Assembly: GCA_025558095.1 (NCBI GenBank)
Contig: JAIVFI010000024.1
Coordinates: 496,001-560,000 of the forward strand
Reading direction: 5' to 3'
DNA length: 64,000 bases
Source of the DNA: Hyaloraphidium curvatum SAG 235-1
Lineage: Eukaryota; Fungi; Monoblepharomycota
Shown here one piece after another: positions 7,000-58,901 of the stretch. Position numbers and translations under genes: made by a program. The stretch's first letter is position 1. The number at the start of each line of letters is the position of its first letter. The notes under the pieces were generated by a model. The model was not told the DNA's origin. It was given only the letters and a program-made list of their open reading frames with translations, and searched no databases.

Positions 7000-9900
7000 A
7001 TGTCGTCGTCTGGCGTGGGTTTGCTTTTCTCGGCAGTTATATTTCACCACGCTCACGCGCCCCTGACCGGAATCGTGCCCTGCTCGCGATTCCCATCTCC
7101 CTCGCGGTCGCTCCCACCCGCTCGGACCCTGATCCCGCTGCGATGCAACGATGCAACCCGCAGTGGTTCTCCTCGATCTTCGGGTCAGGGTCGACCGCCG
7201 ACGCCAGCAAGGAGGCCGCCGAGGCCGTCGAATCGGCGGCCAACGAGGCCATCGAGGCGGTCGAGTCCGCCCTCAAGGGCACGGCGTCCCCGGCCCTCAA
7301 GGACGCCGCTGCCGCGGTGGACAAGGCGCTCTCCGAGGCCAAGAACTCGCCGAGCAGCGCGTCGCCAACCAGCGCCAGCAGGGGCTGGTTCAGTTTCGGT
7401 GCGTTGTCTCTCCTTCGCTGCGTGCATCGGTTGACCCGCACTCCCAGGTTCCGGAACGAAGGCAACTTTGACCTCTATCACGGTTCCCAACTGGGCATCC
7501 AAATGGGTCCCCGGAAAGCCAGTCGAGGTGGCCTGGACAGGCACAGGGCTCGAAGGAAACACGGTCCGCATTGAGCTGTGGAAGGACATACCGCTCCTGC
7601 CCGACGTGCTGATCGGCGTGCTCGAGGACGGCCACGACGCCGCGTCCCTCAAGTGGAATGGCCTGGTCGAGGTCGAAATTCCTCCCGGTGAGGTCTACTA
7701 CGTCGTCGTCTCCGTCGAAGGGAGCCCGCAGGTCAGGGTCCAGAGTGCCGATTTCGAGATCAAGGCCGCCGCCAGCGGCGAGACGGCTTCCGGAGAGTTC
7801 GAGGAGATCGTCGCAGAGGACCTACCTCCCGTCGATGCGGCGCAAGAGCCCGTCGCTGCGGCGTCGACCAGGTCGCTGGAAGCCGCTCCGGCTGCCGCCG
7901 CACAGCCTGCGGGCACCGACGGGTCGCCCGTTGCCGCCGATGAGGACGATGTCCAGCTTGGGACGGCCGTGGGCTCCAAGATCGGAGGATACGCCAGCGA
8001 CGGCCGTGAGTGCGTCGTCGGAAACTGGTGACGCATCGCATGCTTACTCCGGTTGCAGCCGCCATCGTCATTCATCGCCCGAACAAGCGGAGCGTGCTCC
8101 GCAACACCATCAAGGTCCGCTGGAGCTCGAGCAACGTCGATCCGGAGACGCCCCTTCGGCTTACCTTGTGGGACGATCTGCCGTGGCTCCCGGACGTTCG
8201 CTTGGCCACGTTCTCGGCCACGCCTCTCACTGTGGGCACTGGTGAATGCACATGGGTTCTGCCCCAGGGCATCGTTGCGTCGTCGCACAAGCGCTACTAC
8301 GTTCTGGCCGAAACGATCGGAAACCCCGAGGGCGACGTGCGGACGCAGTCGGTGGCTTTCCCAGGCCCCAAGACCGACGGAAACGTGCAGGAATCGGCCT
8401 TAGCGCCGGCTGCCGAGGCTGCACCCACCGTGCGAACGAGTGGTGAGATCTCTGTGCAGCTCCTAAACATCTGGCGACGCTAACCGCACGTGCAGCGGCA
8501 TCCAAAACCGACGCTGCCGTGCCTGAGGAAGTGTCAAAGACGCTCGATGCTCCGACTGCGGATACGGCCGCTGGCAAGGACAAGGAGGCCATCGCCGGCG
8601 AGGAGACGGAGACCCTCATCAGCACCGTGCAAGACACCGTCCAGGGCACCCTGCGCTCCCTTGCGTCCCTGTTCAGCTTCGGCGGCAGCCCGTCACCCGC
8701 AACGGACGCTCCCGTCGGCGAATGGGATCCCCAGGCCGTGGCGGTCGGCGACGAATTGCCTGGCTGGGTGAAAGCCATTCGGTCTCTGCCGGACGACATC
8801 AAGGCGAGCGAGCTGCCCGACTGGACCGACCTGATCGCTTCCGACGGCGACATCCCGGCCGAGCTGCTCAAGGCATCGGGCGAGGACCTGCAGCCGTGGA
8901 TTGCTGCATTGCGTAGTCTTCCCGAACCAAGGAAGAGCGCGCTCCCGGACTGGGCGGCATCTGTGTCGAAGAATATCTCCCCGGCTGCCAAGAAGAAGAT
9001 CGTCGAGGCCATCAAGGACACGCTGCCCGACATCATCGAGGAAGCCGCAGCCGAGGCGGCCGAGGAGACTCAAGCGAAGGCCGAGATCGAGGCAGCGCCG
9101 AAAAGCAGGTCCCTGCCCCAAGCTGAAGGCGGGGAGGAAGAGTTCTCCGAGGACGAGGACGGCGAGGAAGCCGCCGACGACGAAGTCTACTGGGCTCACG
9201 CCATGGAGCTTCCCAACCTCGCCGAGAACCCCGAGAGCCTCGCACCGTGGGCCAAGAGAGTCAGGGCTGCGATGCCTCCGGACGTGCAAGAGGCGCTGGA
9301 CGAGCTCGCCAAGCTGGCCGAGGAGAACTCCCAGGTCGACGAGGACGGCGACGGGGTCCCTGATTACATTCAACGTGCCCAGGAGCTCCCGGCGTTGAAG
9401 GGACCCGGGGACGTGCCGTTGTTCATTTCCAAAGCTCGCGCTATGGCCCAGGCGCTCCCTGGGAAGGCGAAGCAGGTTCCTGCGGACGTGAAGCCCGAAG
9501 AAACCGACCGTCTCATCGAAGCTCTCGACGGAGCGCTCGGCGGCCTGTTCGCTGAGCAGGAGGTATGTGACACGTGCCGAACTTCCAAACAACAGCTGAC
9601 CGAATCCAGCCAACGCAGAAGCAGAGTGCACCGGAAACAGCCGCTCTGGCTTCTGCATCGTCGCAGCCGCCGTCCTCCATCAAGCCTGACCCCAGTACGT
9701 GTTGCAGTACGAACTCACACGTGCAGTACGTGACGGACTTTCTGCTTCAGGCCTCGTCCAGCCCGTGCGGGGCGTCATTCTCGGGACCGCAGAAGAGCCC
9801 GAGAGGACCCAAGTGGACGCTCCTTCTGGAACCGAAGCCAAGCCGGGTCCGGAGAACATTAAGCCACGGTCTGGAGGCGTCGCTCCTGCAGAGATTTTCG

Positions 9901-25760: not shown

Positions 25761-27507
25761 TCAACCGCCCTCGACCTTTGCATCCGCCTCGGGCACCACC
25801 AACCCGCCCTCCCTGGCCACCACGGCCTCGAGCAGCCCCAGCACCCTCCCCAGCCTCTCCTCCACGCTCCTCAGCCTCGCCTCGGCCTCCTTGGCCCTCT
25901 CCTCGCTCCTCTCCAGCAACCTCTTCACCTCCTCATCCCCTCCCGGCGGCGGCACCTCCGGCTCCGCCTCGAGCGGCACCTCCTCCGAGTCCGGATCCAC
26001 CAGCTCCGGGCCCGACCCGGGCGGCGCGGGCGGCGGCGTGGGGTCCCCGCCCCATATCCTCGCCCTGACCCCGCGCCACCACTCCGACACCTTGCCCCTG
26101 CGCTTGCGCTTGAACGGATCGCGGTACGGCCTCCCCTCGATCTCGCAGATCCGCCACTCGGCGTGCCGGATGGCGTCCTTGATCCCCGCGATGCGCGCCA
26201 TGCTGACCTGGAACCGGTCCAGCACGCGCGAGTACGAGTTGGAGATGATGGTCATGGGCATGGCGAGCACGAAGAGGCCGGTGATCATGGCCAGGCAGGC
26301 GACGAAGCGGCCCTGCGCCGTGACGGGGGTGATGTCGCCGTCTGCCGAAGCGGGGGGTCAGCGGCGGCCGCGGCGGCGGAGGCAAGAAGGGGGTTACCCA
26401 CAGCCGACGGTGGTCAGGGTCACGGACATGAAGTAGAGCGAGGTCTCGATGGACTGGAACTTGGAGACGGTGCCGTTGTTGAGGGCGTCGTTGTAGATCC
26501 AGAGGCCCGTCACGGGATCGACGATGCACGAGGCCGATTCGGCGTCTGCGGGGTGTGGAAGAAGTGCGATCAGCCGGAAAAGCGGGGCAGGGCCCGCGCG
26601 GGGACCCACAGTAGACGAGGGTGCCGTAGAAGATCATGACGAGGGTGAAGACGACGAGCAGCGCGGCGATGCCGAAGCTCGACTCGCGGATGGCTTGCCA
26701 CAGCAGCACGATCTTGACGCTGCGGTTGGTCGAGAATATCTTGACCAGCCGCGCGAGCCGGAGCACGCGCAGGATCGAGAGGCCGATGTAGTTGCTCGTG
26801 GTCGCGTCGCCCCCCGAGGCGGCGGCCAGGCCCATGACGAGCCAGAAGGGGAGGGTGGTGAGGATGTCGAGGATGGAGAAGAAGCTCAGGAATTCGCCGA
26901 CGTTGCGCATTGCGAGCCAGTTGAGCACCAGCTCGACGGTGAAGCTGCAGTTTATCCCGAACATGACCCAGAAGGTTATCTTGCGCTCCAGCTCGTCCCC
27001 GGGCACCTGCCGGAACGCCGGCTGGCTGTTGATGATCATCATGATCACCGACAGGATGACGGTAAAGTTGGACCAGGCCGCCACGGCGACGCCGAGCTTC
27101 GAGTCGCCCGGGAAGCGCATGACGGAGCGCAGCCGGTTGCGCCACGCCGGCCAGCCGTCCACGGCCTTGACGTCCTGGTCCGAGCCGACCACGGCCTCCT
27201 CGGCGGCCTTGAGCTCGGCCTCGAGCTCGGCCTTGTGGGCCTTGAGCTCCACGAGCTCGCCGGTGGGGTCCTTGTCGTCCTTCGTGCCGCCGGCGGACGC
27301 GGGTTTGCCTGCGGGCGCCAAGCCGTTGGAGAGGGAGGCCAGGGCCATGTCGGGCGGCAAGAGATGGGAGGCGTCGGCGGCGGGCGGCGCGGGGTTGGCA
27401 CCGACCGGGTCGGGCGGCGCGTCGACCGGCACCAGCACCGCTGCCGCGCCCGCGGTCGGGAGGACCCCGGCAGACCCGCCCGGAGAGTCCGATGGGGCGG
27501 CCGCCAT
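25761..27507 (-). CDS. Voltage-gated potassium channel (6TM, Kv-like)
   Basis: S4 segment LRVLRLARLVK. Removing introns 26546-26609 and 26342-26401 restores LVYYAES and the filter TLTTVGYGDITP. S6 reads GLFVLAMPMTII. Confidence 0.93.
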
Positions 27508-29363: not shown

Positions 29364-30297
29364 CAGGAACCTGCCCCGCCTTCCCAGGAAGCGCCTGGGC
29401 GAAGGCGCGAACTTTGGTGATGAACAGCAGCACGTCTCCGGGACCCTTCAACGCCGGGAGCTCCTGGGCACGTTGAATGTAATCAGGGACCCCGTCGCCG
29501 TCCTCGTCGACCTGGGAGTTCTCCTCGGCCAGCTTGGCGAGCTCGTCCAGCGCCTCTTGCACGTCTGGAGGCATCGCAGCCCTGACTCTCTTCGCCCGCG
29601 TTCTCGGCGAGGTTGGGAAGCTCCATGGCGTGAGCCCAGTAGACTTCGTCGTCGGCGGCTTCCTCGCCGTCCTCGTCCTCGGAGAGCTCTTCCTTCCCGC
29701 CTTCAGCTTGGGGCATGGACCTGCTTTTCGGCGCTGCCTCGATCCCGGCCTTCGCTCGAGTGTCCTCGGCCGCCTCGGCTGCGGCTTCCTCGAAAGTGTC
29801 CTTGATGGCCTCGACGATCTTCTTCTTGGCAGCCGGGGAGATATTCTTCGACACAGATGCCGCCCAGTCCGGGAGCGCGCTCTTCCTTGGTTCGGGAAGA
29901 CTACGCAATGCAGCAATCCACGGCTGCAGGTCCTCGCCCGATGCCTTGAGCAGCTCGGCCGGGATGTCGCCGTCGGAAGCGATCAGGTCGGTCCAGTCGG
30001 GCAGCTCGCTCGCCTTGATGTCGTCCGGCAGAGACCGAATGGCTTTCACCCAGCCAGGCAATTCGTCGCCGACCGCCACGGCCTGGGGATCCCATTCGCC
30101 GACGGGAGCGTCCGTTGCGGGTGACGGGCTGCCGCCGAAGCTGAACAGGGACGCAAGGGAGCGCTGGGTGCCCTGGACGGTGTCTTGCACGGTGCTGATG
30201 CGGGTCTCCGTCTCCTCGGTGGCGATGGCGTCCTTGTCCTCGCCAGCGGCCGCATCCGCATCGAGCAACTTTGACACTTCCTCAGGCACGGGAGCGT
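29364..30297 (-). pseudogene. Inverted, decayed copy of exon 5 of the giant gene
   Basis: Reverse complement matches ~8511-9482 at high identity, with in-frame deletions and a frameshifting deletion after ...PNLAEN. Confidence 0.9.
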
Positions 30298-30408
30298 AAC
30301 CGTTGCCGGGATGGCGACGCCTGCCGAGGAGCCCGACAAGGAGAACGAAACAAAGCAGGAGCAGGTCAAGCCCCGCCCAATCATCTTGATCGCGCCTCGC
30401 ACGCTGCC

Positions 30409-31995
30409 TCACTCCATGCACGCCGTGTCGAGGGTGACCGTCACCCCCGCCGTCCGCAGGATCGACCACAGGCCCACGCCGACGGTGAACATCGTCACCG
30501 CAAACGTGCGCGCGGTCCCGTAGCGCACCACGAACCCCATGAACCGCGCCTCGCACCCGTCCGCCTGCGCGTAAGCCGCGATCAGGTCCGCGTACTCTGA
30601 GAGCGACCGCGCGGCAGGGGTGCCGGCGAGCCCGGCGACGCCCGCGCGGGCGAGGAGGAGCTTGGACTCGCGGTACGCGCGCAGGAGGAGGGACGAGGCG
30701 GCGGAGACCTGCGAGTTGGAGGAGGCGAAGTTGATGATGTCCGTGACGATGAGGACGAGGCTGAAGGCCAGCGTGAGGAGGCACCAGAGGGGGACGCACG
30801 TTCCCGCGGCGATGTTGGCCACGATGCCCACCAAGGGGGCGATCACGTAGCCGATGATGATGTAGGGCGTCGAAGAAAAGGCCGGGAACCTGTTCCGCCA
30901 GAGGAAAGCGAGCCGCTCGCAGACTCCCACGAACGGTTCCTGGTCAACTTCGGAAAAGGTGCCCCCGCGGAAGAGCGCCGTTTCGTGGTTGTCAAGGAAA
31001 GACGAGAGCGCGCGCTTGAGGCCGCGGGAGTGGAGCCGCAGCCCGAGGCGGACCGCGGCGACGTTGCCGCCCACGGTGACCATCGAATTGGTGGTGATGA
31101 TGAAAGCGGTTAATGCAACTGAAGAAATTGTCGTGCGGATGAGCGTCTCCGGTGCGGAATCAAGGCCAGCACACCCACGAAAAGCCGCTGCAACAAAAGC
31201 GCTCCACGGAGACGACCACGTCCTTTCGGAAAACGTCACAAGGACGGTGTACTGCCCGAAAAAGATCAGGGCAATCGAGATCACGGTCCGGTAAGCCTGT
31301 TCCAACAGCCTTAGTGCAACTGCGGACTGGAAGAGCGGGGCCACGCATTCTCCACAAGGACACAGGGGGTCCCCTTGGGAGTGCAGCACCAGCGACGGCG
31401 CGCTCCCTGGTTTCTCAGAGGCACCGGAATCGACCAGCTGGCGCCACCGAGCAAAGACGGCAAGCGGGTGGCCCGAAAGGTCCTGGTCCCGCGCGGCAAC
31501 CGTCCGCCCGCGCAGGAACAACCCCATCAAGCTCGCCGCTGCGATCGTCGTCGACAGTACCATCACGCAGGCGTAGCCGACCGCGAGGTTATCGAGCGGG
31601 AAGCGCCCGTCGTTGAACAGGAAAAGGGCGGGACCGAGCCCGACGGCGCAGAGGAACCACACGACCATGAACCATTTTAGCGATTTGACCCAGAACGGAG
31701 TCAGCGCGAGCTGGAGCCACACGAGGCCGCGAAGCACGGGCGACGCGGTCACGCCGGCGAGCAGCTCGGCGCGGCCCAACACCTCCGAACCCAGCTGGGA
31801 TTCGAGTGCGTCTTCGGGCGCGTTGGCGGCCTTTAGGAGGCGCTGAGCGGGCGGCTGGTGGGCGGGAAACATGGCAAGGGGCTCCGCCGTGGTGAAGAGC
31901 GGCCCCCGGCACACGAGGCAGTCCCGTGTTCCGTCCATGCCCAAGTCGCCGACGCCGGCCAGGGGAACCAAAGACGCAGGTGCTTCGACGCTCAT
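30409..31995 (-). CDS. 7-TM membrane protein, paralog 1 (7TMIC/DUF3537-like candidate)
   Basis: Seven hydrophobic segments; probable 60-nt in-frame intron 31119-31178; C-terminus ARFMGFVVRYGTARTFAVTMFTVGVGLWSILR...DTAC; homologous to the genes at 32149 and 58901. Confidence 0.8.
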   Translation of the reverse strand: MSVEAPASLVPLAGVGDLGMDGTRDCLVCRGPLFTTAEPLAMFPAHQPPAQRLLKAANAPEDALESQLGSEVLGRAELLAGVTASPVLRGLVWLQLALTPFWVKSLKWFMVVWFLCAVGLGPALFLFNDGRFPLDNLAVGYACVMVLSTTIAAASLMGLFLRGRTVAARDQDLSGHPLAVFARWRQLVDSGASEKPGSAPSLVLHSQGDPLCPCGECVAPLFQSAVALRLLEQAYRTVISIALIFFGQYTVLVTFSERTWSSPWSAFVAAAFRGCAGLDSAPETLIRTTISSVALTAFIITTNSMVTVGGNVAAVRLGLRLHSRGLKRALSSFLDNHETALFRGGTFSEVDQEPFVGVCERLAFLWRNRFPAFSSTPYIIIGYVIAPLVGIVANIAAGTCVPLWCLLTLAFSLVLIVTDIINFASSNSQVSAASSLLLRAYRESKLLLARAGVAGLAGTPAARSLSEYADLIAAYAQADGCEARFMGFVVRYGTARTFAVTMFTVGVGLWSILRTAGVTVTLDTACME

Positions 31996-32148
31996 TATCC
32001 CTAAGCTTCGATTTCGGTAACTGATGGTGCCGGCACCCGAGGATCGTCGGTAAACCCCGCGCAGTCGCGATCGACGACCAGCAGTCGCGTCCGATCGCGA
32101 ATTGACTGTGCACAGCCCGGGGAACTCCGCGCACAACCCGGACCCGCG

Positions 32149-33720
32149 ATGGCGAACGACCTGCTGCTGTCGCCCGCCGCGCAGCTCGCCGTCTTCCCCT
32201 CCCCGAGCGCCGGGCCGCCGCCCGACGTGCCGAAATGGCTTTGGCACCAAGACGCGGTCACTGCCGCGGCCGCCGGCCGCGCGGCGCGCCCGCTGACTCT
32301 GCACGTGCTACGCGAGGAGCTCGACAGGTCCGGGAAGCCGATGGGGACGCTGGTGGCCTGGGACATGATCCTCCGGACTCGGTTAAACGGGAGGCCTTTG
32401 CTGCTGCTTCCGCTGTTGGAGATCTCTGCGCTGCTGCTGTACTCCATGTGCTTCGTCTATGGGCTCGGCCTGTTTGGTGTTCGCAACCTGGTGGTCGCCC
32501 TGGTCGGGTTCGTGGTCGTCCGCCTCGCATGGATTCTTCCGGGTTACGGATTCGGGATCTATCGGGTTTTCACTTCGTCGGCGGAGGCTTCTCGATCCGT
32601 GGCCACGGATGCCAAAGCTCAGAAGGACGATCGCCGTGCGCCCGCCGCGGAGGAAGTGCTGTACGATTCCAGCGTTTACGCCCCACTTGTGCGCTATTCG
32701 CAGCTTCTTGCAGACGTCCTTCGGACGACAACCGATACAGAGGCCTCTGGAGCTTGCGATGCAGTAGATTCACTGCTTGAGCACGACGATTCCGACGACC
32801 TGTGTCCCTGCGACGGCTCAAAGTGCTTGGGACACATCTTTTCTTACGCAAGGAGCTTCATGCTGGCCTATGTTGTGGTTCATGCGCTCCTCAGCCAGCT
32901 CACCTTTGCTGTCTCTATCTGGTGGGCACCGGCAGTTACTCTGGCCCTAGCTGTGTGGGGCACCACGTGGTCGGCAGTGTTGTCCGGGGTGTTCATCGCC
33001 GTCCTCACCGTATTCTATTTCGTGGGCACGTTTTCGCCCGGAGTGGTCAACAACCCTAGCATTTTCGCGCTTGAGCACCGGCTTCGCCACCGATTGCTCG
33101 CTCTGGACCTGCAGGATCTCGTCGACCGGTTTTCCCGGGCTCTCGATTCCGAATCTGATCTCAGCGCGGACGTAAAGCTCGGAAACGTGGAAGCGGAACC
33201 GTACGTCGGCCTCCACGGACAGCTCATCGCGGACTGGCGCAGCGCCAACGCAATCTCGACCGCCCCCCGGCGCATGGTCGTTGTTTCGTTCTCTGCCGCG
33301 GCGCTCTGGGCCGTCGTCTGCATCGCCGTCGGCTCCTGCATCCCCGCGTTTTACCTCGTCCAAATGATCATCTCCCTGTGGACGCTCGTCCTGCAAGCGC
33401 TCGGGAGCGCGTACAAGAATCTTCAGCCGGCCCGCACGGCGGCGCAGTACCGCTCCGCCGCCCTCTCCCTCTCCGCGCTCGCTGCCCGGATCCCTCCGGA
33501 CCGCCCACGCCTCCTCGCCGCCGTTCGCGCGCACAGGGACGTGCTCCTCGCCTTCTCCGACCTGGACGCGAGCAAGGCGGGCTTCTTCGGGGTGCCGGTC
33601 ACGTTCGGGACGCTGAGGGCGATGATGGTGACGCTCGTAACGGTCGCCGCGGGCCTGTTTACTGTGCTGAGGGCGACGGGGGTCTACGTGACCATGGATT
33701 TGGCGTGCAGGTTGAGCTGA
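32149..33720 (+). CDS. 7-TM membrane protein, paralog 2 (7TMIC/DUF3537-like candidate)
   Basis: Intronless 523-aa ORF sharing LAxFP, HxxxDxxCPC, GSCIP and AGFFGVPVTFGTLR...DLAC motifs with its paralogs. Confidence 0.8.
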   Translation: MANDLLLSPAAQLAVFPSPSAGPPPDVPKWLWHQDAVTAAAAGRAARPLTLHVLREELDRSGKPMGTLVAWDMILRTRLNGRPLLLLPLLEISALLLYSMCFVYGLGLFGVRNLVVALVGFVVVRLAWILPGYGFGIYRVFTSSAEASRSVATDAKAQKDDRRAPAAEEVLYDSSVYAPLVRYSQLLADVLRTTTDTEASGACDAVDSLLEHDDSDDLCPCDGSKCLGHIFSYARSFMLAYVVVHALLSQLTFAVSIWWAPAVTLALAVWGTTWSAVLSGVFIAVLTVFYFVGTFSPGVVNNPSIFALEHRLRHRLLALDLQDLVDRFSRALDSESDLSADVKLGNVEAEPYVGLHGQLIADWRSANAISTAPRRMVVVSFSAAALWAVVCIAVGSCIPAFYLVQMIISLWTLVLQALGSAYKNLQPARTAAQYRSAALSLSALAARIPPDRPRLLAAVRAHRDVLLAFSDLDASKAGFFGVPVTFGTLRAMMVTLVTVAAGLFTVLRATGVYVTMDLACRLS

Positions 33721-33985: not shown

Positions 33986-34978
33986 ATGGCGAGCCCGCGC
34001 TTCCAGGACCGCCGCATCGTGCTCGGTGGGGCCGTCGGCGAGCCCTTCTCGTTCGAGAGCGCGAATCCCGCCAACTACTTCGAGGCCCTCAACGCCCCCG
34101 ATGCCGCGCCGCGCGTGACGGTCTGGGGCCAGCTCTTCCGCCCTACGAGTGCCGCGTTGCCCGTGCCCGCCGTCATCGTCGTGCCGGGCAGCCTCGGCGT
34201 GGCCGACTCGCACCTTGCACACGCCGGTCGCCTCGTCGAGCTCGGCATCGCGGCCTTGGTCATCGACCCTTTCGGTGTGCGGGGCGTATCGTCGACCGTT
34301 GCCAATCAGGCCCAATACTCGTTCGCTGCGAGCGCGTACGATGTGCTGGCGGCGCTCCGGGCGCTGCAGGCCGTCCCGGGCATCGACCCGGCGCGCATCG
34401 GGGCGCAGGGACACTCCCGCGGCGGATCAGCGGTGCTCACGGCCGCCATGCGCCGGTTTGCGGAACCGATCCTGGCGCGGCGGGCACCCCAAGCTCCTCC
34501 CCTGCGCGCCGTCTACGCGGCGTACCCCTGGTGCGGCCACCAGTTCGACGATCCGGACCCCGGCAGCACGGTCGTCCGCACCATCATCGGCGAGCGCGAC
34601 GAATGGTGCTCCCCGCAGCAGGCGCAGGCCGCGATGCACGCGATCCGTCTTCGCGGGGGCAGGGCGGAGTTCAGGCTCGTCCCGGGCGCGCACCACAGCT
34701 TCGACCGGGAGAGCGGGGTGGAAAAGGTCGCCAACGCCAGCGTGACGCCCAACGCGCCGACGACCTATGTTGGGAACGACGGGGCGATGGTGCATCCCGT
34801 CACGGGGGTCGCGGATCCAAAGGCGACCGACCGCGAGCTGATGCTCTGGGCCGTCAAGGCCGGGTACGGAGTGAGGGGGGCGGCGATCGGCGGGGCGAAC
34901 GGGTCGCAGCAGCTGTTCCGGGAGGACATGGACGGGTTCTGGGCGGACGTGTTCGGGATCGCCCGTTCGAAGATGTAA
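33986..34978 (+). CDS. Dienelactone hydrolase-family alpha/beta hydrolase (intronless)
   Basis: Nucleophile elbow RIGAQGHSRGG, acid residue in IIGERDEW, His in GAHHSFD. Confidence 0.85.
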   Translation: MASPRFQDRRIVLGGAVGEPFSFESANPANYFEALNAPDAAPRVTVWGQLFRPTSAALPVPAVIVVPGSLGVADSHLAHAGRLVELGIAALVIDPFGVRGVSSTVANQAQYSFAASAYDVLAALRALQAVPGIDPARIGAQGHSRGGSAVLTAAMRRFAEPILARRAPQAPPLRAVYAAYPWCGHQFDDPDPGSTVVRTIIGERDEWCSPQQAQAAMHAIRLRGGRAEFRLVPGAHHSFDRESGVEKVANASVTPNAPTTYVGNDGAMVHPVTGVADPKATDRELMLWAVKAGYGVRGAAIGGANGSQQLFREDMDGFWADVFGIARSKM

Positions 34979-41868: not shown

Positions 41869-44800
41869 ATGCTCTCAATCGTCGACGAGCTCATGGACCT
41901 GATCCGGCAGGCTGCGCCAGTCGGAGACCCGTCGGCTTGGGCCCGCGCGGTGCAACTTGTGCGAGCCCTAGAAAGGCGTGCAGACACACCCCAAGAAGCA
42001 AGGACCGCTGCGGCTCAGCTCCTCGTCTCCATGCAAGTCGGCCCCGCCGGTTCTTCTCATGCCCCTTTCTCTTGGCCGCATTGGATTTCGTTCATAAAAT
42101 TTGTCAATGAGGTTCGAGACAGAGGCCCGCAAAGGGCACCGGTCGGCTGATGGATGGAGCCTTCGCAGATATCGATTCGCAAGGCCTCCGTCTCCGGCAC
42201 TTCCATTGCACCTGCTCCGCAGCAAGAATCTACGAATGGGCCCGCAATCCACACTTCCGGCTCGACGACAACTTCCAGCTCTGCAAAGATCAATTTCAAC
42301 ATCGGCTCTGCTCCCCTTTCGAACCCGGCCCCGGCTTCATGTGCACCTGCCAAATCTACCGTTCAGACCACCAAGCTACTTCTTCCGATCACGGGCGCTC
42401 GGACGATGACGGCAAGGTCTTCTCCTTTCGGCCAGCGACCCCTGCCCAGGGCACCTCCCGCCGCTAAGAGAGCTGGTGACGGACATGACGTACCACCTGG
42501 AAAACGGGTGGCGCTCAACACGGTGAGCCTGGCGTATTTGCGATGAACGAAGACGCGGATAACGGACCCGCAGTCGATCCAGTCTTCGGGCTCGCAAGCG
42601 ACGACATGGAAGCGCTTCGACGGTCAAGGATCAACGTCATTGAGCACAAGAAAGCTGCGCGACTTGGTAGATCGTCCGTCATGCATGAACGTGTACCGTT
42701 CGCTGACTCGCTCGCAAAGTCTTCCAAGAATGTCGCCGCCAAGCCCGAACTCGCTGCGTCGACCGACAATGTTGAAGGCAGCGAGCCGATCAAGGCCATC
42801 GACATCGACATCGACAATGCCCCCGACCATCTGTACCCCTTTGCCTGGCTCTCGTTTGATGACCTCGAGTCAACGCACATAAGGTCAGGCTTCGGCACGA
42901 ACCGCATGCTTTTGGTGCTGACTATACCCTCTAGCTTCCCTCTCAAGGCACGCACTTACGAAGTTCAGGCCGCTGTCTCGTGGCAAGGGGGCGACAAAGG
43001 CAGTCAGGACATTGTCTTCCTTCCCGTTTCCGGCTCCAACCCCACTCTGCTCTTAGCATCCGAGTCCAAGGTGCTGCTGGAAAAGTGCAAGCGCTATGCC
43101 GCCTGTGTTTTCCGCCACCGTGCAGAGGAAACAATCGGCAAGCACATCTACGCTCTCCACGACAAGGGGCACGTTGCGCTTTGCGCCGTCCTTGAAATCA
43201 CGGACGGAATCTGGACTGGATTCAAGCTCGGCATTGCGCTCACGTCCAAAGCCATCTGCCATGGGACGCAAGCCGGTGACGCCGGCTCGCTGACCACGAA
43301 GGAGACCGAGAGCGTGTTCGTTGACGTGGGTTCGTTTCTGTTCCCTTGATGATCCGCTACTTAGTCGTCCGCGCTGCAGCATCACAAGCATCTCTTCGCA
43401 TACGTCATGTGCAAATGGCAGTCGCAGCCAGATGCGCACGGATATGGCAGTGCCGACATCGAGGCGCAGATGAAGTACTTCGAGCCGCGGAACTATGCAG
43501 TCGACCGTGATGACCTGCGGAGCTATCTGGAGAGTTCAAATGGGGATCCCACGGACGCTAGGGCGCTCTTGAGCATGATGAGGCTCCGCTCCGACGCTCT
43601 TGAACTGGAGCGTGCCGTGGACTCGCTGCCTGGGTCTCCGCCGCCGGCCCAGTTCTTCCCGCACCAGAAACTGGCCCTCTGCAGGCTCCTCGCCGCGGAG
43701 CGCGCACCTTGCAGCTTTGCCGGGGTGCTGCACCCGGGTTGGATACCTGTGAAGGTTGACGCGGCTCTATGGGGCAAGGCCATACGTGGGCTGCGCGAGC
43801 TGCGTGACCTCATCGCTCTCTGCCACTGGCCGACCGGAGCCTGGTCTTTTAAGTTCTTCGATGCTCCGCGCGCGCCATCCGCCATGATCGCGAGCGATGA
43901 GCCCGGGATGGGCAAGACGGCCGTCTTTTTGGAGCTCGCAAAGCAAGGCAAAGCCTTGGATGCCAAGCTGCGAGAGCAGGGCGTTCCCGAGGAGTTTGTG
44001 GGACGTCCCACCGTCCCGTGCACCCTGCTCATAGCTCCCTTGCTGCTCAAGGGTCAGCTGAAGGACGAGTTGAAGCTCTGGGGCCAGGGTCTTGAGCATT
44101 TGGATCTGGGAAGGAACGCCAGCTCCGCGCGCAGGAGCGAGGGCATCGAGCTCCACCATGTTGAGGCGACAGTGCGGAAGGTCTGGCCCAAGGATCTCGT
44201 TGTCGTTTACCACTCGAACGGCAAGCTCGACTGCGATGAGCGGGAGCTCTTGGCCGTGCGCTGGAGCAGGTTGATCGTGGATGAGGCGCACTTCCTGCAC
44301 AACGACAAGGGACATTTGGCTAGCCTTTGCGCCGAGCTTGCGTACGGAAGCGTCTTTCTGATTACCGCCACGCCTATCGGCTCGCGCCAACCCTTTGCGG
44401 ATCTTCGAAAGCTCGTCGACTTCCTGAACCTTGCCCCGTTTGCAGACGATCAGCTGCGCTACATTGTTGAAACCTCGTTCCTTTCGCCGGAGCAAAAGGC
44501 GCGGATCATCGTCGGTGTCATCGACAAGTGCTTCGTCCGCAGCACAAAGCGCGACATCAAATTGGAAGACATGGAGGAAGAGACGTACCTCGTCGATGCG
44601 TTGCCGGAAGAAAAGCGCCAGCATGCTTTGGTGCTTTGCTTGAACCGTCACCGCATGGAGCGTATGCACGCGGATGCCGAGCTCAAGAGGGTCGTCGAAC
44701 TGGCCAGAGACACTGCCCATCCGGGAGGAAGACTTCCGCAAGGGAAGCAGGCTGTCATCAACACCTTGGGGTCTTTCGAGCGGAGGATGCGCGCTGATCC

Positions 44801-46514
44801 AGACCTGCCTGCCGAGGCAAGCAAGCTGCACGACAGCGACCTGCTTTGGTTGGCCCGGTCGACCGGCCTGCCGCTCTCGGACCTTCCCGTCAGCGAATGG
44901 TTCGATGCAGAGTTCACGTCGCGGGACGGCTACAAGCGCACGACCTCGGTGATGGTGCGCGGCACCCTCGCGCTCTGTGCGGGAGAGCTTGCCGGCCGCA
45001 AGAGCATGAAGTCCACGTTCTTCTTCCAGACGGAGAGAGAAAGCTGGCAGCTGATCCAATTTGGGCTTGCATGGCGCCTCCTCTGCTACGCCGACCTCTT
45101 CGAGAAGGACGTCGACGAGGACGCGGCGATGATCGCCGCCTTCAAGCTTGCAGGACAGATCGTTGACAGGTACCGCGACAAGCTGGTGCCGTGGAAGACG
45201 CTCGAGCAGAAGGGCGCCGCGCAGTTCATCCCCAAGGGCATCGCGCCCAACAAACGGGTGAAAACGAACTTTGTTCCTGGTCAGAGGCAGCAGGGCATTC
45301 GTTTGGCGACGTCCTTTGCGCACGCTTCCGCGATCGTGGACAGGTGCGACCGCATCCAGCTCCTTTTGGAGGAGCAAGCTACGATCGGGGCCGAATGGGA
45401 CGCTGAAGAGAGGATGGACGAGATCACGTGTTCCTCTCCCGATTGCGGGCGCGATCTCCGCGACGATCGCCTCTTTGGCATCGTCTTTTGCTGTGTGGAG
45501 CTCAGGACCCTTTGCTTGCCGTGCTTTTCGACGGCACTCGAGGCAGATCCGAAGCGAATCGGGATTCGTTGCTCCGGGCCAGCGGAGCAGCATGGCAGCG
45601 ACGGCGCCGAGGAGCACGATGTGCCGTACTGGCGCCTTGCAATCATCGAGAACCCCAACGGACAGGAGCATGTGCCCGCGCCACTGGACCACGATGAAGA
45701 TTCCTCCTTCGGCTTTTCAAAAAAGGGCGACGGAGCCGATGATGGCGCCGCCAACGACGTCGCCGAGAACCCTGCCGACCAGGTCCGCGAGTTGCGACTG
45801 GAGTTCGGGACCAAGGTTGCATTCGCTGCGAGCCTCATCAGGGCCCGGCTAGGAGCCATCGGCAAAGGCTACAAGGCCCTGGTTTACAGCTCGCACAAGG
45901 AGGTGTGCAAGAACATGAAGGCTGCCCTGACCTTGGTCCTCGGCGACGCTGTCGATTACGTTTACCACTTCGAAGGCGGTGCCGAGGATCGGGCGCGCAT
46001 GCTGGTTGCCATGAACAGCTCCGCCTCGGTCGTGCTCATCATGGAGATGAAGGAGGAGACCACATGCGGCCTGCACTTTCCGCTCGGCCACGAAGTCTAC
46101 TTCCTGGACCCGCCGCCGTCGCCGAACATGGAGGAGCAGGCAAAGAGCCGGATCCATCGCCTCGGCCAGACCAAGGTGACGCGTGCCATCAGGCTCTACC
46201 TGGAACTGGACGGGAAGATCTCGGTCGATCAGGCTCTGTACCATGCCGTGCGAGGCCCCGGATCTCGCAAACAGGCCGGACCGGCTCACTGCCGCGAGGT
46301 TTATGCCCTCTGCTCGGGCGAAGCCCCGGAGGAGGACCCGGAGCAGGACTTCGTGGACGCTGAGGAAGGGGCGTCGATCATGGATGATGCGGAGGGGGGC
46401 GGCGAGGCCGTGGACGCCGACGGCGATGGAGCGGCGTACGGCGATGACGAAGACGACGACGTCGTCGAGAGCTCCGTGGTGGATGAGCGTGAGAGGCGCG
46501 AAACTCTGTTCTGA
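41869..46514 (+). CDS. Divergent SNF2-family helicase with RING-like insert (Rad5/16-like architecture)
   Basis: Phase-0 introns 42112-42168, 42523-42573, 42667-42719 and 43326-43379 join the upstream ORFs to the 43407 ORF. Motifs DEPGMGKT, IVDEAH, ITATP and QAKSRIHRLGQ; Cys cluster CSSPDC...CC...CLPC...C. Confidence 0.8.
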
Positions 46515-57354: not shown

Positions 57355-58901
57355 TCAACCGGGGCAGATCGAATCCATCACCACGGCGACGCCGAACGAC
57401 TTCAGGATCCCAAACAGCGCGAACGACACCGTCGCGGCCGTGATGAATAGGTTTCTCAGCACCGTCGCGTCGACGACGAACCCCAGGAACCTCGCCCTGT
57501 GCGCCTTTGACCCCGCGTACTCGGCCAGCAGCTCTCTGTGCCTCCTGAGCACCTGCACCGCGCACGGGGCCGCGTGCCTGCGGCGCGCGAGGAGTTCCGA
57601 GATCTCGCGCCGCGCCCAGAGGTACGTGTCCGCCACGGCGTCGAGCTCCCGGTTGCGGGAGGCGGTGTGGACGAGGTCCGTGCAGAGGAGGGAGCCGGAG
57701 CCGAGGTAGAAGGACCAGATGGCGTAGAAGGGGATACAGCGGGCGACGGCCTGGGTAGGGAGATCAGACGGGGTGACGTAGCGGGCGGCGGGGAACTCAC
57801 GGCGTTGATGACGGCGCCGAGGACGATGGTGGCGAAGGCGCTGCTGAGCATTTGCGCACCCGTGTTCGGGGCCAGAAGCCCGCTCGAGATTTCGCGGGCC
57901 AGGGAAGCGTGGAAGTGCTGGTAGAGCTCGGTATCGGGCTGGGCCGCGAACGCCCGTTCGGCGTCCTCCGCCGGCGCCGAGAGCATGGGTTCGTATCGCG
58001 CCAGGAAGTCCGAGAGCGCGAGCCGCGCGGCGCGCACGCGCAGCCGAGTCGAGAGGTCCGAGAGCGCGACGTTGCCCGTGAACCGCGAGCCTTGGTTGAC
58101 GCCGTGGTAGAGGACGACCTTGGCGACCGAGAGGACAAAGAGCGGCGCTCCGTACCACGACGTCCACGTGGTCGAAGCAAAGGTGACAAAGACGGTGTAG
58201 AGTTCCAAAAAGGACATCCAGATAAAGAAGATCGGGACACGGCCGGCGAGTTCGGCCACGCGCAGGCGACCGACCCGCGCGGCAACGCTGCCGGCGCAAC
58301 CCGGGTCCGGGCAGGGGCAGACCTGGTCCCCTGCTTTGTGGGTGACCAGCGCAGGAGCCGAAGCCGCGGTTGCCGCTGCGTGTTTTGGAGCCTCGGTCCC
58401 GACATTGCCAACGAGCTGCATCCAGCGGGCCAGCTGCGCCTGCGGGAGGCCGCTCAGGTCGGCAACATCCTTCACCCCGCTGCTTGAGCGGCGCCACGAA
58501 GCGGCCAACACCAGCAGGATGATGAGCAGCACCGTCTGCGAAATTGCCAGAAGGCCGATGACTATGTTGACGCTGCTGAACAGGCCCGATCCCGCGGCCA
58601 ACACCCCGGTCGCGACGATGCCGGCCACTTCAGCAACGGCCAGGAATGCAGAGCGGGCGTAGAACCGCCGCGCCAACGGCGTGAGCCAGAGCTGCCACCG
58701 CGTCATCCTCCCGATGGCCGACTTTGCGCCGAGCGTCGCGACGAGGGCCCGGGGCGTGAGCGGGTCCCGCGTCCGCAGCGCCGCCGCGGGGTCGAACGCC
58801 GAAAACGCGTCGGCGGGCGCGAGCGTGGGCTCCGCGGGGAGCGCCATGGGGAATAGAGCAAGCCATTCGCGGTCCGTGAACGAGAGCGGCGGCGAGTCCA
58901 T
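57355..58901 (-). CDS. 7-TM membrane protein, paralog 3 (7TMIC/DUF3537-like candidate)
   Basis: Intron 57751-57800 joins the two ORFs (AVINA|AVARCIPFY); C-terminus ARFLGFVVDATVLRNLFITAATVSFALFGILK...DSICPG. Confidence 0.8.

Follow-up and report, generated by a model that had tools for sequence, protein, structure and literature searches.

A very large protein family with a predicted 7TMIC fold in the early-diverging fungus Hyaloraphidium curvatum: candidate chemoreceptor-like channels

Introduction

Three diverged genes for proteins of about 500 amino acids, found in a 64,000-nucleotide stretch of DNA (the window) from the early-diverging fungus Hyaloraphidium curvatum (Monoblepharidomycetes), raise the question of whether a fungus can possess its own repertoire of channels built like the OR and GR of insects and, if so, on what scale. 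Proteins of the 7TMIC superfamily are defined by seven transmembrane segments (TM) with the N-terminus inside and the C-terminus outside the cell, inner loops longer than outer loops, a long anchor formed by TM4-TM6, a split TM7, assembly into a tetramer whose pore is formed by TM7b, and ligand-gated conduction (PMC9998090). They have been described as sparse outside animals and plants, with one GRL gene in each of two Spizellomyces chytrids and small families in other lineages (PMC7746228). A receptor-like repertoire as large as the one described here has not been reported for the 7TMIC fold in any fungus, and a literature search found no paper linking Hyaloraphidium with 7TMICs or chemoreceptors.

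Results

Three paralogues in the window

When the window was scanned in six frames with the family HMM, exactly three copies were recovered. Genes A and B are single-exon coding sequences in divergent orientation, both members of the 7TMIC-fold family; gene A (30409..31995, minus strand) encodes 528 amino acids plus a stop when read from its first ATG and gene B (32149..33720, plus strand) encodes 523 amino acids plus a stop. They are paralogues with 27% identity over 354 amino acids (E 4e-24). The 153 bp between their start codons (31996..32148) presumably function as a shared bidirectional promoter, judging by the positions of the genes. The start of gene A is uncertain, since ATG codons occur at 31995 (the first) and 31938 (the next); in the AF2 model of the longer form, the first 27 residues have a pLDDT below 50.

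Gene C covers the whole span 57355-58901 on the minus strand. It appears as a copy split across two frames (HMM positions 7-380 and 378-507) because it contains a canonical GT-AG intron of 50 nt (57751..57800, GTGAGT...CCCAG), which shifts the frame by 2, the exon frames abutting at HMM positions 378-380. Exon 1 (57801..58901) translates into 367 amino acids from the N-terminus through S5 (263 bits against the family HMM), and exon 2 (57355..57750) into 131 amino acids plus a stop, including the CIP loop, S6, S7a, S7b and a C-terminal Cys (E 4.5e-38). Translation and searches treated each exon by itself, not as part of a joined, spliced product.

The preliminary description of this DNA had proposed three paralogues in a basal fungus, two of them head-to-head and the third at 57355-58901, and the open reading frames and the identity of the host agree with it on each point. 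The shared motifs that it listed are all present in alignments of 23 and of 43 family members, where they take the forms LALFP, (V/A)R(Y/W)xQL, VTLxxxxW, RLRxRA, CxPA, AxxNxQ and RARFxGxxVTxGxxR.

Family size and selection

The same description had suggested a lineage-expanded family, and a profile scan of the genome together with a protein search made visible an expansion far beyond the first three copies. At least 84-85 full-length family loci were scored in the H. curvatum genome, drawn from 698-889 first-look candidates and all with E≤1.5e-112 against the family profile. A profile search of 1.84 billion representative proteins returned 461 matches at E≤1e-3, of which 283 reached E≤1e-30; all ten of the matches sampled were H. 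curvatum gene models in GenBank, named "hypothetical protein". Homologue searches with gene B and with the family alignment yielded at least three other proteins, the prefilter being saturated at 8000 candidates. The H. curvatum family probably totals 300-450 loci and has so far been seen in this species only. A search of metagenome contigs with a six-member subfamily alignment gave 156 pattern matches and no relative, which is a weak negative result.

Family members form small clusters, tandem or head-to-head, and in-frame stops occur in a few copies. Among the closest pairs of paralogues dN/dS is 0.20-0.48, indicating that these are constrained coding genes under purifying selection.

Topology and architecture

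Hydropathy averaged over the family resolves seven hydrophobic segments, and the AF2 models of A and B each contain seven membrane-length helices plus a cytoplasmic helix, S7a, so that the two approaches agree on the number of TM that had been proposed. The predicted pattern of short outer and long, helical inner loops is likewise reflected in the measured lengths: the loops after TM1, TM3 and TM5 (EL1, EL2 and EL3) have 7, 12 and 5 amino acids, against about 87, 78 and 67 amino acids for the largely helical loops after TM2, TM4 and TM6 (IL1, IL2 and IL3). Lys and Arg residues in the 12-residue TM flanks average 9.9 on the side of the N-terminus and long loops and 2.9 on the opposite side (mean of 43 members). 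By the positive-inside rule, which is the basis of this assignment, the proteins are predicted to have the N-in/C-out topology that the preliminary description expected.

The helices of the gene B model are long; S4 (273-294 and 303-333), S5 (351-395) and S6 (400-447) each extend far beyond the span of a bilayer. These lengths suggest that S4-S6 project below the membrane bundle as they do in the anchor domain of 7TMICs. Behind them both models show a split TM7, a feature that the preliminary description had cited for the known families. In gene B, residues 453-509 (33505..33675, plus strand) form S7a (453-469), a 16-residue hairpin-like linker with RARFxG, and the membrane helix S7b (486-509), as assigned by DSSP on the model; in the gene A model S7a spans 460-476 and, after the linker, S7b spans 492-515. 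The B model therefore has lengths of 45 (S5), 48 (S6), 17 (S7a), 16 (gap) and 24 (S7b), and BmGr9 and MhOr5 have 52-54 (S4), 52-53 (S5), 45 (S6), 15 (S7a), 13-14 (gap) and 21-25 (S7b).

S7b, which we presume to be the pore helix by analogy with the known channels, is the most conserved TM in the family, with a pairwise identity of 0.43 against 0.17-0.22 for the others. Its consensus is R-x4-T-x2-T-V-x2-G-L-W-x2-L-R, and among 182 unique family members the gene B residues R490, T498 and R508 are conserved in 96%, 95% and 91% respectively.

A conserved loop motif and a cysteine pair

The TM2-TM3 loop, of about 70-90 amino acids, carries a family-specific and near-invariant H-x6-C-x-C-x(2-4)-C motif (H/C3). 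In gene B this is H-x6-C-x-C-x4-C at residues 212-226 (32782..32826, plus strand), with H212 conserved in 98%, C219 in 99%, C221 in 100% and C226 in 99% of the 182 unique members. The positive-inside rule places the motif in the cytoplasm, and it is a candidate metal (Zn) site.

Two further cysteines are each conserved in 99%. Cys397 (33337..33339, plus strand) belongs to the CxP motif in the 5-residue outer loop between TM5 and TM6, and Cys520 (33706..33708, plus strand) to a DxxCP motif in the short extracellular C-terminal tail. In the B model a strand at 397-399 lies beside one at 513-515, and we propose that C397 and C520 may form a disulfide.

Searches at the level of sequence

No match was found in 43 family members at E≤10 to the Pfam models 7tm_6 (PF02949), 7tm_7 (PF08395) or DUF3537 (PF12056), nor to these three models in A, B and both exons of gene C at E≤1. 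PF12056 and PF08395 were also without a match in the whole H. curvatum genome, as they were in the control genomes, and the family profile, run against PDB sequences, gave nothing at E≤10. Scattered matches to other Pfam models were sub-threshold and non-recurrent and were set aside as noise; one of them, GPHR_N, scored 16.9 bits where the cut-off is 22.1. As far as sequence searches can tell, the family resembles no known 7TMIC, and membership of DUF3537 or of the GR is thus unsupported at this level. The suggestion that the proteins were especially DUF3537-like in sequence, including their C-terminal motif, found no support at the level of HMMs; the sole pointer towards it is a list of language-model neighbours of B, in which DUF3537 clusters supply 5 of 30 matches with a score of 0.92.

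Structural match to insect OR and GR

The AF2 models have pLDDT values of 89.8 (B) and 86.3 (A), although the two are not independent, since both were built from one shared alignment of 43 paralogues. Foldseek searches of the PDB placed OR/GR structures at the top rank for both models, with TM-scores of 0.2-0.5 and no E-value below 1e-3. When the Foldseek matches were re-aligned, OR/GR accounted for all of the best 19; the top ranks were held by all eight independent OR/GR clusters in the PDB, each with 80% or more of its length aligned, and the unrelated structures ranking below them covered only about 100-200 residues. A shape search of the ESM Atlas gave TM-scores of 0.64-0.68 to three animal clusters of 361-419 amino acids. 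The fold predicted by these models therefore specifically matches that of insect OR/GR, as the preliminary description had supposed, and no GPCR is among the best 50 rows of the PDB structure searches.

Identity in the structural alignments with OR/GR is 5-11%, and it might be argued that the family has converged on a 7TMIC-like packing with no shared ancestry or channel function, being for example a lineage-specific multi-pass transporter, scaffold or enzyme-like membrane protein whose long helices are like those of OR/GR only superficially. We regard convergence as rather unlikely. The top structural ranks contain no other family of membrane proteins beside the eight OR/GR clusters, the unusual split into S7a, linker and S7b and the helix lengths closely match BmGr9 and MhOr5, and conservation of S7b together with variability of S1-S6 is the pattern seen within OR/GR families. 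We infer that homology to 7TMICs, rather than convergence, accounts for the resemblance.

A tetramer prediction for four copies of residues 300-523, made without the family alignment, scored 0.00 and 0.04, values that carry no weight for or against a tetramer.

Discussion

A, B and C are, in our view, probably members of a very large H. curvatum family of chemoreceptor-like channels with the 7TMIC fold. Such a protein would begin in the cytoplasm and cross the membrane with seven helices joined by very short outer loops; S2 and S4-S6, extending far into the cytoplasm, would form an anchor bundle with the separate S7a helix. On the analogy of the solved OR and GR structures, this anchor bundle would hold four subunits together around a central pore lined by S7b. 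The ligand pocket that gates the pore would lie in the S1-S6 bundle, which is highly variable, and the family as a whole would represent a diversified repertoire of channels for sensing the environment. Tetramer formation, ion conduction and ligand gating are all extended to the family from that analogy. If S7b does form a pore, its chemistry should be unlike that of the cation-conducting ORs and GRs, because its outer end bears Arg508, conserved in 91%, and the Gln and Phe of the GR pore are absent.

A reading that we consider improbable accepts the family as true 7TMICs but not as chemoreceptors; its members would then be channels that are constitutive or under internal regulation, or else membrane proteins comparable to plant DUF3537 or PHTF, and their copy number might reflect self/non-self recognition, defence or drift. 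The role of most 7TMICs outside insects is unknown, the long TM2-TM3 loop recalls the PHTF-like Class-B 7TMICs, and regulation from within the cell is suggested by the near-invariant H/C3 motif, predicted to be cytoplasmic. Furthermore, H. curvatum is to our knowledge non-motile, without a motile stage, so that chemotaxis is no obvious use for so many chemoreceptors. Against this, the family has diverged into hundreds of paralogues in which S1-S6 vary and the putative pore helix is conserved; together with moderate purifying selection (dN/dS of 0.2-0.5), small clusters and a few in-frame stops, this is a birth-and-death pattern, which is typical of ligand-receptor repertoires, and the nearest shapes in the Atlas are GRL-sized and not PHTF-sized. 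Seven-helix receptors of the GPCR or PAQR type, which share the seven hydrophobic segments and, in PAQR proteins, the N-in topology, are very improbable and we reject them: neither GPCR nor adiponectin-receptor chains occur among the best 50 rows of any of five PDB structure searches, no Pfam GPCR or HlyIII match was found among the 43 members at E≤10, the charge bias gives an N-in topology opposite to that of GPCRs, and long cytoplasmic helices with a split S7 are foreign to both.

Returning to chemoreceptor-like channels, a stronger version, which we put forward only tentatively and think doubtful, is that H. curvatum has independently built several hundred ligand-gated channels. This would be one of the largest 7TMIC repertoires outside animals, with approximately one gene per 70-100 kb and a size like that of insect OR families, a fungal 'chemosensory genome' in which an H/C3 metal module would couple gating to intracellular regulation. 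If a fungus does maintain hundreds of diverged genes with the 7TMIC fold under selection, large receptor-style expansions of this fold would no longer be a speciality of animals. Such a fungus would also offer a unicellular, nerve-free system in which to probe what the ancestral fold does, be it to gate on ligands, to select ions or to respond to regulation by way of the conserved H/C3 loop, and add a deep new branch to the debate over homology and convergence within the 7TMIC superfamily.

Comparison with known systems

Insect ORs and GRs, such as Orco, MhOR5, AgamOR28, AaegOR10, BmGr9, Gr43a and Gr64a, are Class-A 7TMICs that form tetrameric, ligand-gated cation channels. Their identity with the Hyaloraphidium family in structural alignments is just the 5-11% given above, and there is no HMM match. 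The animal GR motif TYhhhhhQF is reduced in the Hyaloraphidium S7b to, at most, its Thr (T498, 95%), with no conserved Tyr, Gln or Phe. The fungal proteins possess in addition an N-terminal segment of about 50 amino acids with LALFP, a TM2-TM3 loop of 70-90 amino acids with the H/C3 motif, a conserved Cys pair, one residue in EL3 and the other in the C-terminal tail, and a conserved Arg where S7b reaches its outer end; they occur in a fungus, which has no nervous system. Plant DUF3537 (PF12056) is a family with the 7TMIC fold and a language-model neighbour of B, but its HMM matches no Hyaloraphidium member.

Eukaryotic PHTF-like Class-B 7TMICs are described as having a long TM2-TM3 intracellular loop, in a preprint whose 'Fungi' category comprises Chytridiomycota and Blastocladiomycota only (Himmel et al. 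2023, bioRxiv 10.1101/2023.08.30.555482). The Hyaloraphidium proteins have a long IL1 (mean about 87 amino acids), but this loop is marked by an H/C3 motif of its own, a search of the 43 members at E≤10 found no Pfam PHTF-domain match, and the animal proteins nearest in shape, of 361-419 amino acids, are not PHTF-sized.

No fungal Class-A 7TMICs have been described other than SpunGRL1 and SpalGRL1 of Spizellomyces (Benton et al. 2020, PMC7746228); each is single-copy in its genome and was found through sequence similarity to GRLs (PMC7746228). The Hyaloraphidium family differs in that its copies number in the hundreds and that no link could be detected by sequence. Compared by description, the two are alike in belonging to early-diverging fungi and in combining 7TM with an N-in topology and long intracellular loops, and in each a single position of the four in the TM7 motif is retained.

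Three paralogous genes in the window

The window, positions 496001-560000 of contig 24 in a 31.9-Mb genome of 55 contigs, has a G+C content of 65%. Since the nearest database proteins of its genes are each named 'hypothetical protein DFJ74DRAFT_...' of Hyaloraphidium curvatum, the preliminary description was right to place the host among basal fungi. A six-frame scan of the 64-kb window with the family HMM confirmed the three paralogues recognised earlier, recovering exactly genes A, B and C. The proposed head-to-head pair comprises two long, divergent open reading frames (ORFs): gene A at 30409-32304(-), whose first ATG at 31995 gives a product of 528 aa, and gene B at 32149-33720(+), encoding 523 aa. 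A distance of 153 bp separates the two start codons, and the products are 27% identical across 354 residues (E 4e-24). Gene C, at 57355-58901(-), is spread over two reading frames instead of forming one ORF, with a canonical 50-nt intron at 57751-57800(-) (junction ATCAACGCC/GTGAGT...CCCAG/GCCGTC) and a frame shift of two. This single intron lies at the end of S5, 4 codons ahead of the invariant cysteine of the CxP motif; searched separately and not as a spliced product, exon 1 (367 aa) covers family HMM positions 7-380 and exon 2 (131 aa) positions 378-507. Genes A and B and most paralogues examined are intronless; at loci L008, L013, L022, L023 and L029 the match begins only in mid-protein, which suggests that some family members carry introns further upstream.

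Among neighbouring ORFs, one at 25933-27507(-), within a few kb of genes A and B, carries a Pfam Ion_trans domain (E 1.3e-13) and resembles a gene for a cation channel of the voltage-gated type. Directly downstream of gene B, a 330-aa ORF (33986-34978(+)) matches the dienelactone hydrolase (DLH, E 8.8e-11), prolyl oligopeptidase and PETase-like alpha/beta-hydrolase families, and the 1035-aa product of an ORF at 43407-46514(+) contains a helicase domain of the SNF2-related type (E 1.4e-15). Gene A is overlapped at its 3' end, in another frame, by a 438-aa ORF (29483-30799(-)), whose acidic, Pro/Ala-rich product was assigned to no family.

Family size and evolution

With gene B as query, a search of the H. 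curvatum genome returned at least 84 matches among 698 first-look candidates; they are spread over many contigs, and most are full-length open frames, 500-600 aa long. The genome-wide count with a family profile, built from 43 members, found 889 candidates, and all 85 that were scored fell at E<=1.5e-112; because only the best candidates are scored, these 85 loci are a floor. Among 1.84 billion representative proteins, the profile matched 461 at E<=1e-3, of which 406 also passed E<=1e-10 and 283 passed E<=1e-30. Ten matches sampled across the 152 listed of these 461 were, without exception, H. curvatum singletons annotated as 'hypothetical protein'. On these counts and species names, the 32-Mb genome probably carries about 300-450 gene models of the family. 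JGI metagenome contigs, scanned by pattern, yielded no relative.

Tandem or head-to-head pairs occur at other family loci, with paired copies at L043 (1402-2919 and 3238-4749) and L050 (1033-2568 and 2822-4384), and second copies on the opposite strand at L037 and L046. The L043 copies are 78% identical with a dS of 0.59, which points to recent duplication. Across the closest paralogue pairs (50-79% identity) dN/dS is 0.20-0.48; these are constrained coding genes with fairly fast evolution. At several loci an otherwise full-length match is broken by one in-frame stop codon, TGA, TAG or TAA (G000 contigs C31:552652-554154, C10:742981-744504, C28:112832-114286, C18:635013-636554, C7:67463-69022 and C26:256373-257836). 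Pseudogenisation, an intron or an assembly error might explain each of them; pseudogenes would fit birth-and-death evolution.

Conserved residues and predicted topology

Every motif listed from the three window genes is present in alignments of 23 and 43 family members. Over 182 unique members (gene B numbering), near-invariant positions from the N-terminal side to S6 are P17 (99%), R315 (98%), C397 (99%) and N424 (99%), followed towards the C-terminus by G481 (97%), R490 (96%), T498 (95%), G511 (98%) and C520 (99%). An H-x6-C-x-C-x(2-4)-C pattern, hereafter the H/C3 motif, is equally conserved (H212 98%, C219 99%, C221 100%, C226 99%). No other transmembrane (TM) helix comes near the conservation of the last one, whose mean pairwise identity is 0.43 against 0.17-0.22 in TM1-TM6.

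Family-averaged hydropathy bears out the seven hydrophobic segments described earlier, with short loops after TM1, TM3 and TM5 (7, 12 and 5 residues) and long loops after TM2, TM4 and TM6 (about 87, 78 and 67 residues). Lysine and arginine in the 12-residue TM flanks number 9.9 on the side that bears the N-terminus and the long loops versus 2.9 on the opposite side, from which the positive-inside rule predicts the N-in/C-out topology previously suggested.

Sequence relatives

The suggested likeness to DUF3537 did not hold at the level of primary sequence. Pfam searches of A, B and the gene C exons, and of the 43 members at E<=10, brought up no meaningful hit, with no match to DUF3537, 7tm_6 or 7tm_7 in either set; PF12056 and PF08395 found no match in the H. 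curvatum genome, though the control genomes were equally silent. The profile matched no PDB sequence at E<=10. The sole sequence-derived pointer to DUF3537, a lead and not a test, is the list of protein-language-model neighbours of B, in which DUF3537 clusters fill 5 of 30 places at 0.92, along with TMEM39 (0.93) and unnamed membrane proteins of ciliates (0.96). Sequence searches thus placed the family in neither DUF3537 nor the gustatory receptors (GRs).

Predicted fold

AlphaFold2, run on the 43-paralogue alignment without templates, produced confident models of B (pLDDT 89.8, pTM 0.89) and A (pLDDT 86.3, pTM 0.86), which are not independent because both use one alignment. Structure searches returned the anticipated insect odorant receptors (ORs) and GRs. 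In Foldseek against the whole PDB these alone filled the top 13 rows for model B (best match BmGr9, E 4.9e-3, prob 1.00) and the top 8 for model A, with no E-value below 1e-3 and low TM-scores of 0.2-0.5. Exhaustive VIA-align comparison of model A with 48,161 representative chains ranked eight OR/GR chains 1-8 (MhOR5 13.4 to Gr64a 9.5), covering 80-95% of each chain length; the unrelated rows that followed matched only 100-200 residues of long helices. In the ESM Atlas, model B retrieved three unnamed animal clusters of 361-419 aa, from Cnidaria, Echinodermata and Arthropoda, with target-based TM-scores of 0.64-0.68 and 325-370 residues aligned; all other matches reached at most 0.48 by target in far shorter alignments.

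Compared with published BmGr9/MhOr5 boundaries (PMC11100771), the predicted secondary structure of B follows the solved receptors closely. S1 (83-104, 22 aa) is followed by S2 with its cytoplasmic extension (111-156, 46 aa; 46/46 in BmGr9/MhOr5), S3 (228-264, 37 aa), S4 (273-294 plus 303-333; 52/54), S5 (351-395, 45 aa; 53/52), a 4-aa turn and S6 (400-447, 48 aa; 45/45). The split TM7 comprises S7a (453-469, 17 aa; 15/15), a linker with two short bridges (470-485, 16 aa; 14/13) and S7b (486-509, 24 aa; 21/25). Model A has the same elements; hence both models contain every feature that defines the fold, S4-S6 being long, S7a a separate helix in the cytoplasm and S7b a membrane helix. The seven-transmembrane ion channel (7TMIC) fold and topology are well supported and very probably correct, and homology with the 7TMIC superfamily is likely but unproven.

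Proposed function and comparison with known 7TMICs

In solved ORs and GRs, tetramer and pore are built by the anchor bundle and S7b, and the ligand pocket by S1-S6 (PMC11100771). In the present family S1-S6 are variable, and S7b and the anchor motifs conserved, a pattern that, with family size, clustering and moderate dN/dS, would fit a diversified repertoire of ligand-gated channels. When residues 300-523 were modelled as a four-copy complex, the scores were 0.00 and 0.04, values that count neither way. The preliminary interpretation as a whole is partly supported, and ligand-gated channel or chemoreceptor function is a reasonable if tentative proposal, with odds a little short of even.

The point of note is the scale of 7TMIC-fold expansion in a fungus. 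Fungal GR-like genes in Benton et al. 2020 are only single genes in two Spizellomyces species (PMC7746228), and 'Fungi' in Himmel et al. 2023 (bioRxiv 10.1101/2023.08.30.555482) denotes Chytridiomycota and Blastocladiomycota only; our literature search found nothing linking Hyaloraphidium with 7TMICs or chemoreceptors.

Several features set the family apart from known 7TMICs. The GR signature TYhhhhhQF is missing except for a Thr, and the outer end of S7b bears a conserved Arg (R508, 91%). The family adds an N-terminal segment of about 50 residues with an LALFP motif, and has a conserved Cys pair, in the 5-residue S5-S6 loop and the C-terminal tail, whose segments form adjacent strands in model B (397-399 and 513-515); with the N-in topology the pair would be extracellular or lumenal and could form a disulfide. 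An S2-S3 insert of about 70-90 residues carries an invariant R182 and the H/C3 motif, which would be cytoplasmic given the N-in topology and could be a candidate Zn site. A long TM2-TM3 loop is described by Himmel et al. 2023 as the mark of PHTF-like Class-B 7TMICs.
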